Positions 27,685 to 35,112 of a DNA stretch of 64,000 nt are shown in pieces. Position 1 is the stretch's first letter; the number at the start of each line of letters is the position of its first letter. The stretch covers positions 62,001 to 126,000 of the forward strand of contig JAHLWZ010000791.1 of the NCBI GenBank assembly GCA_020536535.1, written 5' to 3'. The translations under genes and the position numbers were made by a program. Source of the DNA: Pelomyxa schiedti. Lineage: Eukaryota; Protista; Evosea. Below the pieces are notes generated by a model. The model made no database searches and was not told the origin of the DNA. It saw only the letters and a program-made list of their open reading frames with translations.

Positions 27685-28180
27685 TCAGAGCTTTAAGCAG
27701 TTCCAGAGACCGGACTTCACACTAAATTCTTGAGGAATCCAAGCCTGTAAGCCCAAAAGAAGGTGACCTGACCGTACGCGGCGTTTCATTGTTTGTGTAC
27801 ATATGGGCAACCGTGTACCAAAGTAACTCTGAGCAGTGGTCTGTTGTCCGAACACACAGGTGTGCTGGATGGTGTCCGAGTCGTGGTGCTGTGACGTCAC
27901 TCTCTGTGTGGTCCCCCCACCACCTTCTTCTTTTCTGACCCATTGCACCGACATGAACCCTGTGGTGTCTACGGTCATAAGCACGTTCTCTGGCGTGGTC
28001 ACGTCTCGTGTTTCATATCTTCCGTCGTATGTGCCATAGAACTGGTTCCATTCTCAATTGGGAACCTCAGACCCGGCACTTTGGACGACGTGAGGTGCTG
28101 ATGGATTCTTCCTCTTGATGATGTACACTATGCGCGTAGATGACCGCGCAGCGACTGCGTCATTGTCCAGGTTGTCATCG
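27685..28180 (-). pseudogene. Probable remnant of a gene truncated by the transposon
   Basis: ORFs 28054-28245 and 27685-28002 share a frame and are separated by one TGA (28054-28056). The frame runs directly into the left TIR. Confidence 0.3.
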
Positions 28181-28197
28181 CATAACTGGATCATGGG
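28181..28197 (+). repeat. Left terminal inverted repeat
   Basis: CATAACTGGATCATGGG, the exact reverse complement of 32259-32275. The match extends one more base outward (G/C). Confidence 0.93.
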
Positions 28198-28376
28198 CGA
28201 AGGGGCGAAGGTGTCAGTGTTTTCCTCTATGAAGTCTTCGCCCAAAAACCCAAGGGGCGAAGGTTTTTGCTGTCACTTCCCTCTGGAAACCTTCGCCCCT
28301 AGGGCGAAGGTTTTTCCTCTCAAAAAGCCTCGCCCCATGGGGCGAAGCTTTTCCTGGGGCGAAGCTTTTTGAGAGG
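28195..28376. repeat. Left subterminal array of GGGCGAAG/CTTCGCCC motifs
   Basis: About 8 copies in both orientations, several forming short palindromes such as aaccttcgcccctagggcgaaggtt. Confidence 0.88.
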
Positions 28377-28414
28377 AAATAAGGTAAAAAGGTAGTATTT
28401 GATAAAAAACACTG

Positions 28415-29881
28415 TTAAACCTCTTTTTGCAAAAAGTGTGCTAGTGACAACAAAGCAGCCATTTGGTTCATCAAGCATTCCCAGGAGTTTTGGGCATCAG
28501 AAGATGACAGCCTACCTTTGCAACATGTCTGTTTCAGGTGTTTGTGCCACTTGTTGATTGCTTCACCAAGCTCTTGTTTCAAAATACTAGGAGGACCATA
28601 CAGCACAGCATCCCACCAAGAGTGCTCACACCAATAGTGTATAGTTGGGTTAAGTTGGTTCCCAAACAGTGCACATAAGGCCAACATCTTCTCCCTTGCT
28701 TCTTCCCATTGAGAATAAACCTCAGAAGTCAATTTCTCACAGTGTAACCAGTCATATGCAAACTGCAGTACACTTAAAAGAGAGGTTAAAATCTCCTTCA
28801 AGGTTTTAACCTCTGTCACATTTGGTTTCCATGCCAAGGGGAAACATTGCTCCAGCTCAACTTCCACCTTTGCATTTTTGATAAAACAAATATCAGTGAG
28901 ATACTGGCCATCAATCAGCTTTTTTGCTTTATTGGCCTGAAATGTCTTGTCAGGCCACTTTGGAGCAACTTGAACCACACAAGAAATCAACTGTGATGCC
29001 ACACCTGTGCATCCAACAGCCTTCAGCCACAGCACACAAGAGGCCAAGAGATTCAGCACCACATTTGCAAATGAGTGCAAAGGATCATACACCAAGCGCT
29101 TCAAGATTGACTTCAGCAGTTCTTTTTCTCTTTGAGAAGCAGAATAGTAATACCTCCAAATGTTTTCCAACCATTCACCAAGCTTATGCCTCACTAGAAA
29201 TTCGCAACCATCTTTGAAGCAAATGGGCTTGTCTTGGATGTTGATGTGTTTCCTAGAGGCATTTGGAGCAGCACAGTCAGAACACAAAGGAACTGCTTGC
29301 ATCCAGTCCACACAACAACAAGTTCTGATTGGCAGAGAAACAGTTTCATCAGCAATGACAAATTCAAGTGGTTTCCCATGCAAGAAATCCAAATAGTCAT
29401 TGAAGTGAATCTCTTGGTCAATCTCAGCAAGTAAAGACTCATTAACAGTCTCATTCACCTTCATCATGGCCACAGTGGCAAAGCAACTCTGCTTTTGAGC
29501 ATTGTGAACAGAAGATACACTGAGGCCATAAAACAGGTTCTTCCCCCACAGTTGTCTTCCATCAATGAACCCTTTGACCAAAACATGGGAAAGCCCATGA
29601 AGCTCCCACAGGTTGCTCTTGGTAATGTGATCCACAAGAAAATGAAACACAGCAGGACAGGAAGCATATGCTCCATTCCTGGGATCACTCATTGCTGATA
29701 CTTGTGCCCACTCACTGTGTTTCTTGACACACTGTGAGATTGCCAACTTCCGTTGCGGAATATCTAATAGCTTCCCAAGAAGAGACCACTTGGCATTGGA
29801 CAAGTTCAGTTGAAGCTTAACAAAGGTGCAAAGTGCAACAGCTTCTGCTCTCTCTCTTTCATTGAGGTGTTTTTTGAACAA
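28415..29881 (-). CDS. RAG1-core/Transib-like DDE transposase (488-aa terminal exon)
   Basis: LVKGFIDG (D107), TVAMMKVNETVNESL, CCVDWM (D192), ICFKDGC, YDPLH, FQANKAKKLI, HYWCEH and GPPSILKQELGEAINKWHK (E440). The order is collinear with the RAG1 motifs VKESCDG, PLCLMLADESDHETL, GYDEK, CTLC, IDALH, MNGNFARKLM, HKTLAH and GSIGAWASEGNESGNKLFR. Confidence 0.85.
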   Translation of the reverse strand: MFKKHLNERERAEAVALCTFVKLQLNLSNAKWSLLGKLLDIPQRKLAISQCVKKHSEWAQVSAMSDPRNGAYASCPAVFHFLVDHITKSNLWELHGLSHVLVKGFIDGRQLWGKNLFYGLSVSSVHNAQKQSCFATVAMMKVNETVNESLLAEIDQEIHFNDYLDFLHGKPLEFVIADETVSLPIRTCCCVDWMQAVPLCSDCAAPNASRKHINIQDKPICFKDGCEFLVRHKLGEWLENIWRYYYSASQREKELLKSILKRLVYDPLHSFANVVLNLLASCVLWLKAVGCTGVASQLISCVVQVAPKWPDKTFQANKAKKLIDGQYLTDICFIKNAKVEVELEQCFPLAWKPNVTEVKTLKEILTSLLSVLQFAYDWLHCEKLTSEVYSQWEEAREKMLALCALFGNQLNPTIHYWCEHSWWDAVLYGPPSILKQELGEAINKWHKHLKQTCCKGRLSSSDAQNSWECLMNQMAALLSLAHFLQKEV

Positions 29882-30015
29882 ACTTGAAGGAGGAGTACAG
29901 TCTTGTTGTGTACCTTTTTGGAATACAAAAAAAATAAAGTGAAAATTTAAGTTCTGTTTGTGTTATGAACCATACAAGAAGAATTGGATTGAATCAAAGA
30001 TTGAAGAAACCTAAC

Positions 30016-31966
30016 TTCCTCTTGATGTGCCCTGGTATGAGCATCAATATCATTCTTATGAGCATCCAAGGTGCGTTTCTTCTCATCTTGCAGATCTTTG
30101 ATCCTGGAAAAAGTTACATGTGCAGTAAATTAGAGATCACATTGGCCAGCTCCTTGTCATGTGCTTCAATTGTCTTGGTCAGAAGGTGGTCAAACTGAGT
30201 TCGTTGTGTAGCCATTGCAATGTCATGTGTGTCTTGAAGGCTTTGTGTAACTTTTCAGGCATCAGCAAGCTGTGCTTTCAACATTGGGATTTGATCTTGA
30301 AGTGCCCCCTGTTTTGTGTTAGAAAATAATGGAAGGAGATGAACAGAATATAATACAGTTGCTAGGACCGTTGACTGCTGGAGACTATTCATTGTAGAGT
30401 GCACTAACTTAGTAGACAAACCTGGAACTGATTTCACAGGAGAACTCTGAAGCTTCAGTGTTGGCTTCTTGTTTGGTGGAGGAACCTCTTCATCATCATC
30501 ACCATCAACTGTCACATCATCTTGACTGCTGGATGCTGAGGAGCTCTTTGAGGGTGGTGCAGAGGGCTTTTGCTTGTGATGTACACGGCTTTCCCTAGCT
30601 TTTAACAGGTCAGAAGCCAGGCTCTTCACCTCTTGGTCTGGATCCTCATTCACAATTGAGGTGATTACTGGGATTCGCATTCCATTCATTTTTGATGAAC
30701 GAAGGAAAATGTCTTCCTTGTTTGGTGCCACAGTGATCCTCAAAGAAGCTTTTGATGACTTTGTGTTTTGAAAGATCTCAACAAGAAAAACTGGGGTGTC
30801 TTTGCTGCCCACTGTCACTTGCTGTCCAACATGTACTTCCAACTTCGTTTTCTTGTGAGTCTTGGTCCTTTGAAAACATGTGGCAGCAGTCCAGAAGTAC
30901 TTCCCATCAACTTCAGTCATTCCACCCTTGGGTTCCCAGGTACAACCTTTTTCATTTAAGGCTTGAAAAGCTTGCCTTTTCTTGATCTCTGCTTGTCTCT
31001 CTCTACTGGCTTGCACTGTGGACAACTCTTGAATGAAATTTGCTTTGCCCTCAAACTCGTGGTTAGCAGCCAGATCCAACACTTCCTTCAGAAAGGGGTA
31101 ACTGGATTCAGCCCAGCGCTTCACAAGACCTGCATCTGGTCTGCAGTTGTCAAGAACAATGCTATCTCTGATAGCACGGGCATCACCTTGTGAAGATGTT
31201 ATGCTTGAGAGTAAGTATATTTATCATTGTACCATTTCCCCTTAAAGGATCCTTGACAGAAGACTGAGTATGGTTGCCAGTGTCATCAGAGGGCTTAGGT
31301 GTGCTCACATTTACCCCTTTGGCGTGCTTTGTTGTGGAGTCTGATTGTATTTAAAGGTCAAAATGTAAAAATTGTTGTTGTACCTTTTTCAAGGGCAGTT
31401 GCAACACAAGGCTCAGTAGAGGTGCAAGGCAAATTTGAGTTTCTCTTTTCTGTTCCTTTGAAAGATGAGATGATTATAATGTCATTGTCAAACTCAATGT
31501 TACCTGGATTTGGGAACTCAGGTATTCTGACTTGGGTTACCTTGGAGGTATCCAACAGAGGATCTAATTCATGGGAAGTTCATGAGAGGGAGGGCTGCAA
31601 TTTAAAACACTACTTACTGATAGCACTAGTCAGATTTTGTGCTTGTTTTTGTGCTTCCATTAGATTATTTGAGACAATTGTTGGTTTGTCTGGTAGTGGA
31701 ACCACAATGGGGCTTGAAGGAGTCACTGGTGCTGAAGTGGTGTTCCCTTGACTTTCTGGATTATCACTCCCTCGTGACCTCCTAAAACATGCATTATGAT
31801 GGTAGAACAGACTACATAACACCCACAGAGGTATTACCTTGATGGTGTTGCACGCAAGGAATGTCAAAATTGACACTGTTGGTTGTGTTGCCACTTCAGT
31901 CATCTCCAATGATTCATTTGACTCACACTGAGATGTTTGGGACTGTTGCAGATGCCTTTTCGACAT
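30016..31966 (-). CDS. Transposon upstream spliced module (N-terminal extension or second gene): Ser/Thr-rich, BAH-like segment, coiled coil; in-frame TGA at 30255-30257
   Basis: ORFs 31610-31966, 31358-31555 and 30255-31124 are on the transposase strand, with GT-AG gaps. Coiled-coil-like sequence continues past the TGA (KVTQSLQDTHD...; IKDLQDEKKRTLDAHK). Confidence 0.6.
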
Positions 31967-32036
31967 GTCCGCCTTGTTTGAGGGATATTTTTCTTTTTTT
32001 CACAGAAATCAGACCATCAAAACTTTTCCCTCAGTG

Positions 32037-32260
32037 AAACCTTCGCCCCACCAGGGCAAACACTTTGGCTCACTCAGTAAGGTGTTTGTCTACCACGTGG
32101 ACCTTTGTGCTTGTTGTTTGGAAGAGGTTGGTTACCCCCAAAACCTTTGCCCCTGGGCGAAGGTTTTGAGAGGAAAAAAAGCTTCTCCCCATGGGCAAAG
32201 AAAAAAGGGCGAAGGTGTCAGTGTTTTCTGCTATAAAGCTTCGCCCCAAAACCTCCGCCC
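32037..32260. repeat. Right subterminal array of GGGCGAAG/CTTCGCCC motifs (some decayed)
   Basis: Four perfect copies plus the variants gggcaaa and ctttgccc. Confidence 0.85.
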
Positions 32261-32275
32261 CATGATCCAGTTATG
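32259..32275 (-). repeat. Right terminal inverted repeat
   Basis: CCCATGATCCAGTTATG. Confidence 0.93.
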
Positions 32276-32599
32276 CCCCCCACTTCTTCAAAGAATGTTT
32301 GCTTTCTTGTTCGAGACAAGCTTGGACTGCGAGCAGTCCGAGCGTGCTCAGTGATTCACGGTCCACTTCAATCGAGGAAGTGGAACGTGAAGTTGAACGA
32401 ACCGGTGGTGTGATTAGGAGGAATAGTAAGTAGCGGACTCTTTTGTCCAGAGGTGCAATAAAGAAAGTGGTTTGATAAAATATAAGAAGCGGGGGATTAC
32501 ACGGCCCCTGCGACGGTTCGGGAACGGTTTGCGGAAAGTCGGGCGAAACGACCGGAACTGGGTTTTTCGAAGAACCCTTTTCGTCCTTTCTTTCAAAAC

Positions 32600-35112
32600 A
32601 TGGCACAGACAGGCGCGGGGGTGTTTACATGGAGACACATGGACTGTGTGGCGCGTCCGTCGGTGACGCCGACGACTACTCCCGAAATGCACCTTGTCAC
32701 TACCACGACGTCATCAACGACCCACGCAACTGCAACTGCCACTGCAAGTTGTTGTTTTGGGGGAAATGTTATGAATAGGAACTCACATTGTGGGGTGGTG
32801 CACAACGGGACCCTGTACGTGTACGGGGGATACGATGGCCACTCGGTGCTTGGTGTGCCAACTGGAATTTTCCCTCTTACTTTGTTTGTTTGTTTGGTTG
32901 GTTACTGGTAATAGGAGATATGGTGTCTCTGAACCTATGCAAGGTCAATGGCTTTACTGATAACCGCGTAGAGTGGGATATTGTCCCACAAATAAATGCT
33001 CCGAGTCCCAGACACAGTGCCACTGCTGTCCTGCATAAGAACTCAATGTAGGTTCTGAATGTGCCCGCTTTCTTGTTTGTCATTTATTTGACCACACTGT
33101 AAAGGTATGTCTTTGGGGGTGCCACTGAAAGTGGGGCAACCAATGAATTACTCTCATTCAATTTCTTGACAAAAAAGTGGGAAGTGGTTGTACCACATGG
33201 TGCAGTGGATTCTCCGCCTCCCCGGTATGTTAGGATATTCTATTCAACTTCCAGAATACCTTCTAAATTAAACAGGTGTGGACATTGCTCGGTGATATGG
33301 AAAGATTCCGTCGTTATACATGGCGGTTTCTGTGATCAGGACTCTTCAACAACTGAGGATTGTTGCCAACATCTCTGGAGATTCAGTTTACGCAGCCACA
33401 AGTGGTCCTGTCTCAGGGTGTGCGGGACAACCATTCCGGCGCCTCCACACTTCCATTCTGCCGTTTTAGTCAACAATCGGCTGTATGTCTTGGAAGGAAA
33501 GGGCGCAAAAACTGTAGAGAAGCACATCAGGTTAGTTCCCCAAAGGTTGACTCGAGAATATAACTAAAGAAGCCCGCAGTACTGCATTGACCTGAAATCA
33601 TTGACGCTCGAGCATCTTCCCATCCCCCCTCAACCATGGGCAGATATTTTTGGGCACACATGCACAGCTCTTGCCGGAACATCATTGCTTCTTTTTTTGG
33701 GTGGTTTCAGTGGAGCTGAGAATCATGCTGTCAGTAATGTGGCACTATTTGATATATCCAATTACCAGTGGACCAGTGAGTCAACAAAAAGCCTTTCTCA
33801 TTAATAATCAGTCGTTAAGATATCTCCTCAGAAGGAAATGTTGCTGCATTACACTTCCATGGGATTGCCTGCTCACCAGGAAAGTGAGGAACCTCCTTTC
33901 ATTTCCTTCCTATATCTTTATTAGAATATTCGTCTTGGGTGGAATTCCACAGAACTCTGAGCGTGCCGGTGACATGTTTTGGTGCTGCTCCAGGACTGGG
34001 TGTGATTTAGATGTGCTTTCCTCTCTTCCAGAACATCTTTTATGTTGCATTCTTCAGGTCCTTCCCCTCACTGATATCCTTTTCCGCCTGTCCCACGTGA
34101 GTTGCCAAACCCTTCTTTTCATTCAGTCAAGCTCTACCAAGGTCAATAAAGCACTGTACAAATTCTGCCATCAACAATCCACTATTCGTTCCATGGCCCG
34201 ATGTCATGGCATTTCGTTCCCAACTTGTCTTCTCGATCAGCTTGATCAGTTTAATAGGTTCCAGCAGCAAATTTATGAATTCTTGGCAGTGTGTTCTTAT
34301 CCAGATCGAATGTGGCTCCCAAGGAAGGACTTTACTTTGGTTCCATTGAAAAGAACATGTTGGGACATGAAAATTTGTGTTGTTGGTGCTCCTCAAGTTG
34401 GAAAATCAAACCTTATATTAAGATTCCGACAGGGTGTATGTATCCCACAATAAACAGTTCTCAGTGAATTTACCCCCAATTTAGATATTCGTGGAGGTTT
34501 GTGTCTCTTGTTGCAAGCATTGGCAAGTAACCTAAAAACCCCTCTCTTTTTTTAGCAGCTAGACCCATCATATGAAGGTGATGACGATTGGCGCAAGATG
34601 TTCCAAGTTTCAAATGAATATTCTTTTCCGCACTCATTTCTGAAAAGGTTGACACAGCGTTCTTTAGCGTCGATATAGTGGAAGAAGGTAAAGGTTTGAG
34701 TCAAAACCCCAAAATGTTGGAGCTATCGATCCAACATGCACATGTGTTATTTGTCTGTTTCAGTCTTGCTGAACCGGAGACTTTGGAATATGCCCGGAAT
34801 AAATTCCAGCAGATTAGAACAGTCCGAGGGACCGCTCCATGTCCAATTTTTCTGGTTGGGTGCAAGTCTGACCTATCTGATAATAATAGAAGCACTGTAA
34901 GCTTTGATGCTTTTTCCTTTGCTCACACCAACCGAATTCCGGTATGTGCCCATCCTTGTGCATTTTTCAATCACAGTTCTGTTTTCACACAGTATCTTGA
35001 AACATCAGCTAAACTGAACACCAATGTTGATGCATGTTTCCACCAAGCTGGGAAAGAATTCTTCCTTGCAACACAGCCCGAACCTCCCCCATCCAAATGT
35101 CTTTTGATGTAG
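32600..35112 (+). CDS. Kelch-repeat + F-box + Ras-like GTPase domain + CaaX fusion protein
   Basis: Kelch: LYVYGGYDG, YVFGGAT, VVIHGGF, LLFLGGF, IFVLGGI. F-box: LSSLPEHLLCCILQVLPLTDIL. Ras: KICVVGAPQVGKS, LVGCKSD, YLETSAK. The protein ends CLLM. The last kelch blade, the F-box and the P-loop lie in one ORF frame (33650-34453). Confidence 0.85.

Follow-up and report, generated by a model that had tools for sequence, protein, structure and literature searches.

A RAG1-fold transposon of Pelomyxa schiedti without detected target-site duplication and with G-rich additions at its junctions

A 4,095-bp element with perfect 17-bp terminal inverted repeats (TIRs) lies within the window, a 64,000-nucleotide stretch of the genome of Pelomyxa schiedti, an anaerobic giant amoeba (assembly GCA_020536535.1, contig JAHLWZ010000791.1, positions 62,001 to 126,000). 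Its motifs, fold and termini identify it as a cut-and-paste (class II) transposon belonging to the CMCT clade (CACTA/Mirage/Chapaev/Transib/RAG1). Its families show no sign of a target-site duplication (TSD), and most junctions that could be compared with an empty site carry extra bases, predominantly G. The reading we prefer—blunt insertion at an unstaggered break, completed by host end-joining with untemplated G addition—has, in our estimate, about an even chance of being right. A wider proposition is more tentative, and we think it rather more likely to fail than to stand: that the element represents an undescribed, superfamily-level RAG1-fold lineage across microbial eukaryotes, which dispenses with staggered strand transfer and integrates via host end-joining and untemplated G.

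The boundaries proposed in the initial annotation were borne out by the coordinates (Table 1) and by the multicopy nature of the TIR. The genome-wide search that it had called for located 38 ends, as against none for the reversed control, and the TIR is therefore not due to chance. Read depth inside the element is 300-480, compared with 19-29 in the unique flanks; roughly 12-16 near-identical full copies have been collapsed into the one assembled copy, and the TIR family has therefore been recently active. Element ends are precise in all Pelomyxa copies and all have CAT termini, with the terminal CATA belonging to the element itself, CATG and CATATG being absent from empty targets. A sister-family pattern gave 92 further genome matches, a few of them by chance, and the transposase protein has 67 matches in the P. 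schiedti genome. Subterminal GGGCGAAG-like motifs, with 9 and 8 copies at the two element ends and 3 in the 3.6-kb middle, are probable binding sites for the transposase.

No TSD is seen in the window, where the two flanks are unlikely to be a true pair: the left one is part of a host gene family, and paralogues in this family run on into the right-end flank of contig C1927, and because of this colinearity the left and right flanks of the window probably come from different insertions of the collapsed repeat (L and C numbers are our own labels for loci and contigs). An in-frame join of the two flanks was put down to chance on the same ground. The left flank itself (27860-28180) is a frameshifted member of that gene family, which has more than 20 paralogues at 73-82% identity and no Pfam match.

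Flank pairing is irrelevant to a set test, in which a k-base TSD demands matching sets of left and right flank k-mers. For k = 1-8, left/right matches did not exceed the control in either family 1 (20/15 ends) or family 2 (35/26 ends), and family 1 gave no k-mer matches at all at k = 4-8 (5-mers, 0/15). A strict target at the terminal CAT or CATA with an AT or TA TSD was rejected, since CATG is absent from empty targets. Miniature inverted-repeat elements with paired ends were likewise discounted as TSD evidence, C3792 being a hairpin artefact and the flanks of C848 failing to pair. One insertion can be viewed from both sides: L013 and L021 correspond to opposite sides of a single empty site (C905), with no target base lost, an overlap of at most 1 bp, and G tails on both sides.

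Relatives in other eukaryotes provide a further view of the ends. Seven were traced to contigs (the L099/L100, L102/L103, L108, L110, L111 and L115 families) and are TIR elements of 3.1-4.2 kb that end CA..TG (CAC, CAA or CAG) or, in one case, CG (CGT). They carry a transposase together with a divergent accessory gene comprising a low-complexity start, a small domain and a coiled coil. L099 and L100 represent a single element found at two sites, both in long-read assemblies, and are the only relatives from long reads; short-read relatives may have mismatched flanks. Where both flanks were available, no duplication was found in 4/6 relatives, long-read L099 among them, and a 2-bp match in 2/6 (L100, AT; L115, CT). 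Lack of a TSD seems to be a property of the lineage. Two relatives harbor a nested Tc1/pogo-type element with a DDE_1 gene and 247-bp TIRs (L113:3401-5494 and L114:3699-5936).

The second departure from a conventional insertion lies in the bases that adjoin the element. Among 135 Pelomyxa ends the first base outward of the TIR (-1) is G in 56% of cases and C in 6%, at both element ends, and runs of at least four G's adjoin 11 ends, where the same flanks would lead one to expect 1.0 (p 1e-8). Comparison with empty sites revealed 1-10 bases absent from the target at 10/15 junctions, and G accounts for 23/27 of the added bases. A single G was added at L022 (compared with a 99% copy), L024, L017 (six paralogues) and the left end of the window; longer additions are GG at L058, GGG at L013 (99% allele), TGG at L131, AA at L061 (99% allele), GGG or GGGG at L021, and a 10-nt G-rich tail at L064. 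No base was added at L007, L098, L118, L067 or L028. The clearest cases are those judged against 99% alleles or copies, namely L013, L061 and L022. Three loci were left out of the tally: L015, where an extra CAAC was read against an inverted repeat in the same locus and is doubtful, and the self-target junctions L002 and L025. Added G's lie on the strand reading target-G-CATA, as if appended to target 3′ ends. That the G bias stems from a preference for certain targets was rejected in most tested cases, as the G is absent from the empty sites; L067 and L028 are the exceptions. In the window, the G at 28180 is probably an added base, judging from paralogous empty sites; no empty site matching the C6 junction at the opposite end was found.

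Several of these loci deserve comment in their own right. In the comparison of L028 with L205/L206, a TIR-like word (CAT..TGGATC) follows in the empty site, perhaps as the remnant of a decayed end or as a preferred target. The L022 flank (contigs C482 and C2258) is a multicopy retrotransposon-like target with a dUTPase-like motif recognized by eye, into which family 1 and family 2 elements have inserted ~80 bp apart. At L002:1392-1437 and L025:212-259, element ends are fused to their own subterminal region ~47 bp inside, as an inversion and a tandem end, respectively; these self-joins suggest intramolecular or local attack, with amplification chimeras as the alternative.

Outside Pelomyxa, G occupies the outward position at only 2/17 ends of relatives, and the bias therefore seems to lie with the Pelomyxa host. 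Two spliced PolX-family genes in the genome, L202 (C496) and L203 (C1066), are candidates for the G addition. In the scheme that we favor, the transposase would bind the subterminal motifs and nick at the TIR, leaving hairpins on the flanks and blunt element ends, as RAG1 and Transib biochemistry would predict. Integration would then not follow the staggered strand transfer of known CMCT elements; instead, the blunt element would be joined to an unstaggered target break, and host end-joining would finish the junctions, with a polymerase adding a few untemplated bases, mostly G, to target 3′ ends. By analogy, the products resemble V(D)J signal-end junctions with N nucleotides.

A number of points weigh against this scheme. 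It is built on sequence data. Several of the empty sites are paralogues, not alleles, and for just one insertion could both junctions be compared with a close empty site, the L021 side there being a 21-nt local match. About 11 of the 135 ends are probably chance matches to the search pattern. The motifs of the two PolX proteins, YFTGS and HFTGS, are presumably lambda/beta-like, not the GWTGS of TdT and Pol mu. Finally, the 2-bp matches in L100 and L115 and in one Pelomyxa pair (CA) are near chance, and a TSD is possible in some families.

Other routes to the same junctions can be envisaged. Strand transfer at both ends with zero stagger, the mechanism proposed for Spy (PMC4122938), would explain the precise element ends, the absence of target loss and, if G were added at the nick in the non-transferred strand and fixed in some daughters, the alteration of about two thirds of junctions. 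This route has Spy as its precedent, but requires extension and ligation with loop-out at the nick, and tails of up to 10 nt, or at both ends of one insertion, are awkward to accommodate; we consider it somewhat improbable. Imprecise excision could alternatively bring donor-flank bases along, such that G-rich junctions were inherited from earlier sites, as the variable length of the extra bases and the recurrence of flank endings such as ATGG and GGGG might suggest. An original source of G would still be required, however, the tested empty targets are not G-rich at the site, and no donor among the assembled ends matches the AA or 10-nt tails, all of which makes such inheritance unlikely.

Nor do we find it at all probable that the TIR extends to a degenerate 18th base, read as the outer G, or that this G is palindromic (a P base) and stems from a hairpin formed at the end of the element. 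The -1 G does complement the terminal C, TG follows in 20% of ends, and the first bases of the L064 tail are the reverse complement of the 6 target bases that come next; but a single G plus background would not account for the long G runs, enrichment does not reach past TG to ATG or TATG, and 44% of ends lack the G. Concern that the pattern is an artefact of amplification, sequencing or assembly is prompted by the use of single-cell amplified DNA, the collapsed repeat, and the chimeric flanks and hairpin artefacts that are present. Against this, the TSD test does not depend on flank pairing, correct TIR sequence follows the G tails, the C6 of the window occurs in two DNA runs, and another C-rich junction (C181) occurs in an RNA run of a second sample. 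An artefactual origin therefore strikes us as very unlikely.

The kinship of the transposase bears on how these junctions should be read. The RAG1-type blocks reported in the initial annotation (VKGFIDG, VDW, CFKDGC, DPLH, FQANKAKKLI, HYWCEH and ELGEAINK) are present in order as quoted, as is the numbering of D107, D192, H420 and E440. Among 36 relatives, mostly metagenome proteins, D107, D192, C221, C226, H269, H415, E437 and E440 are kept, with C221, C226 and H269 invariant. The Cys pair is spaced C-x4-C here and C-x2-C in most distant relatives; H415 and H420, the latter likewise conserved in relatives, form an H-x4-H motif, 20 residues separate H420 from E440, and E437 and E440 constitute an ExxE motif. 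In a structure model of the 488-aa core (pLDDT 92, pTM 0.89), D107 and D192 each lie at the end of a strand, and E440 belongs to a helix. In the Foldseek comparison that the annotation had proposed, RAG1 ranked first among solved structures (E 5e-9, TM ~0.6), followed by BbRAGL and HzTransib (E 8e-6), with no unrelated family on top. VIA Z-scores were 18.8 for RAG1, 18.2 for BbRAGL, 12.7 for the P element, 12.6 for HzTransib and 8.6 for Hermes, the RAG1 and BbRAGL alignments (Z 18.2-18.8) spanning 412-424 residues at 13% identity. A language-model feature search also placed RAG1 first (0.95), tied with one unnamed cluster.

A special tie of the element to RAG1 is possible on these models, but is not conferred by the top rank itself, because the solved structures compared include no CACTA, Mirage, Chapaev, Lanisha, ESTA or Plavaka transposase, and predicted CMCT models match as well. 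For instance, an unnamed cnidarian cluster scores TM 0.75, CACTA Transposase_21 0.70-0.73, and unnamed Streptophyta and Mucoromycota clusters and DUF1280 (0.68) fall at 0.68-0.70. Sequence and profile searches gave no match to the RAG1/Transib core; in the PDB there was no match for the protein at E up to 10 and no relevant one with the profile, and no Pfam match was found for the transposase, including Transposase_21, DUF1258, DUF1280 and Plavaka. That the element is a true Transib or RAG1L, near the origin of the V(D)J recombinase, is consequently improbable: RAG1 heads the PDB and feature searches, and the H-x4-H motif, 20-residue H-to-E spacing and ExxE are shared, but sequence-level similarity, a 5-bp TSD and RAG2 are absent, the termini are CAT, and other CMCT models reach TM 0.68-0.75. 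Of the lineage originally proposed, membership of the clade that contains RAG1 survives, by fold and motifs, and placement in the Transib/RAG1 lineage proper is no more than a possibility. The H-x4-H spacing is present, and C2C and H(3-4)H motifs are common to CACTA, Mirage, Chapaev, Lanisha, ESTA and Plavaka transposases, and H(3-4)H to the whole CMCT clade (PMC12730594).

The 488-codon frame first described as an uninterrupted open reading frame (28415-29881, minus strand) is indeed stop-free, but has a TTG start and is probably a last exon, not the whole gene. The first Met of the frame is at about residue 64; since the helices at the start of the frame are conserved in relatives, an upstream exon is needed. 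Most likely, it is the last exon of a nine-exon spliced gene that begins at ATG 31966 and encodes ~1,085 aa, with the last splice predicted; this joined model, checked for reading frame only, reads into the transposase core with one stop, and family searches were made exon by exon. Splicing of the predicted last intron was not seen in RNA contigs and, if the intron were retained, a stop at 29947-29949 would yield the accessory protein alone. CACTA elements encode separate TnpA and TnpD proteins, an arrangement that such an accessory protein would parallel. The accessory region matches no Pfam or Atlas family, its structure model is unusable (pLDDT 44), and its similarity to the divergent open reading frame of the relatives is weak (hhalign probability 17%, E 0.0014). 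The assembled copy is either defective or a mixed assembly path, because it carries an in-frame TGA where reads have CGA, a 67-bp loss, and 4 instead of 45 letters at 31866-31869.

Table 1. Features of the Pelomyxa element and its junctions, in window coordinates.
Feature	Position	Strand	Remark
Junction G	28180..28180	+	absent from paralogous empty sites; paralogues 75-80% alike
TIR, 17 bp, begins CATAAC	28181..28197	+	gene-downstream end
Subterminal array of GGGCGAAG-like motifs, both orientations, 9 copies	28198..28400		downstream end
Last exon, transposase core, RAG1-like fold	28415..29913	-	
E440 codon	28562-28564	-	last exon
D192 codon	29306-29308	-	last exon
D107 codon	29561-29563	-	last exon
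Other marked residues: C221, C226, H269, H415, H420, E437	28415..29913	-	last exon
Predicted 62-nt intron joining accessory part to transposase core	29914..29975	-	frame check
Eight upstream exons: low-complexity N-terminus, small beta-rich domain (~30650-31140, motif VxVGQQV), C-terminal coiled coil	29976..31966	-	
Introns	31141-31186, 30309-30356, 30104-30141 (+1 base)	-	spliced out in RNA contigs, second sample
Predicted upstream introns	31782-31837, 31564-31617, 31450-31503, 31341-31383	-	
67-bp loss relative to majority form	30141..30142		
In-frame TGA in assembled copy	30255..30257	-	reads have CGA
Subterminal array of GGGCGAAG-like motifs, 8 copies	32001..32258		upstream end
TIR, 17 bp	32259..32275	-	gene-upstream end
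C6 run adjoining TIR (G6 outward)	32276..32281	+	fits G-tail pattern

Beyond the window, more distant and intronless transposase relatives occur in Pelomyxa at L073:891-2687 (contig C1768) and C1064:3859-4941, with open frames of 599 and 528 aa. No TIR was found around the C1768 relative, and it is therefore possibly domesticated or truncated. In a sister-family element (L070:7009-8451, contig C276), the accessory exon shares its reading frame with a host-like dehydrogenase sequence upstream, which bears a GAGLLG motif; an assembly gap lies nearby, and the join is either a fusion or a mis-assembly. An 86-bp repeat (L062:334-419) with at least 40 matches, many at contig ends, is probably the end of another transposon family. 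To the right of the element, a kelch-repeat host gene (32600-33100; Kelch_1 E 4e-4) starts ~325 bp beyond the TIR; as it lies outside the TIR, it was rejected as a RAG2 counterpart.

In a limited search of open texts, we found no description of a CMCT lineage without a TSD, nor of added G-rich bases at otherwise precise DNA-transposon junctions. If integration does employ host end-joining, the element would offer a testable natural parallel to the step by which RAG passed from transposase to recombinase, and a model for how a RAG-like nuclease hands ends to non-homologous end joining, its junctions being like V(D)J N-regions. Annotation that relies on TSDs would miss such elements or set their bounds wrongly. 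The 490-aa core is compact enough for expression and assay.

Among known systems, the CMCT clade, to which the ancestor of RAG1 belongs, supplies the frame: zinc motifs, 5′-CA..TG-3′ termini and the fold shared by RAG1 and Transib were all found, but a 2-5-bp TSD was not found in the Pelomyxa families. For a protist transposon of the CMCT clade, a RAG1-like fold is to be expected, and an amoebozoan CMCT element, EnSpm-1_DDi, is already present in a published Repbase-based tree. With RAG1 and ProtoRAG (RAG1L), the Pelomyxa protein shares the core fold, the D-D-E triad, the C/C/H/H zinc residues, H-x4-H, the H-to-E spacing of 20 and ExxE. It differs in having CAT instead of CAC ends, no 5-bp TSD and no sequence-level match; a Pfam scan found no RAG2-like kelch gene within the TIRs, RING and nonamer-binding domains were not found, and an RSS-like (recombination signal sequence) heptamer CACAGTG is not present at the element ends. 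Transib, exemplified by HzTransib, has CAC ends and a 5-bp TSD. The Pelomyxa element resembles it in its ~490-aa core, single RNase H fold with zinc insertion and short TIRs, and departs from it in its CAT ends, lack of a TSD and additional accessory region or gene.

CACTA/EnSpm, Mirage, Chapaev, Plavaka and ESTA share the C(2)C and H(3-4)H motifs, CA..TG termini and model TM of 0.68-0.73, and CACTA also the subterminal repeats and accessory protein; they differ in being described with 2-5-bp TSDs (PMC12730594), of which the Pelomyxa element has none. Lanisha (Carey et al., bioRxiv 10.1101/2020.07.03.163634, PMC8245031), which branches near Transib in the CMCT tree, is likewise a multi-ORF TIR element whose RAG1-type transposase is recognizable only via profile methods. 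Compared by description, moss Lanisha elements are 10-12 kb, with 35-40-bp TIRs and 5-8 ORFs (PMC8245031), whereas the Pelomyxa element and its relatives measure 3.1-4.2 kb, with TIRs of 17-47 bp and two coding parts. A lineage of its own within CMCT is the best explanation for the Pelomyxa element; the lineage may already be classified in Repbase, possibly under Lanisha, and the Atlas clusters from Streptophyta, Mucoromycota and Cnidaria may be Lanisha, whose known host range they match. Spy (PMC4122938) is the closest parallel in integration, as a cut-and-paste TIR transposon without a TSD, but belongs to the PHIS clade and inserts at a fixed AAA|TTT target that is left unaltered, with no added bases; neither that unaltered target nor a PHIS-type transposase was found for the Pelomyxa element. 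Spy has been presented as the only TSD-less group of eukaryotic cut-and-paste elements (PMC4122938), and if CMCT contains a TSD-less lineage, that would be a second case, independent of the first.

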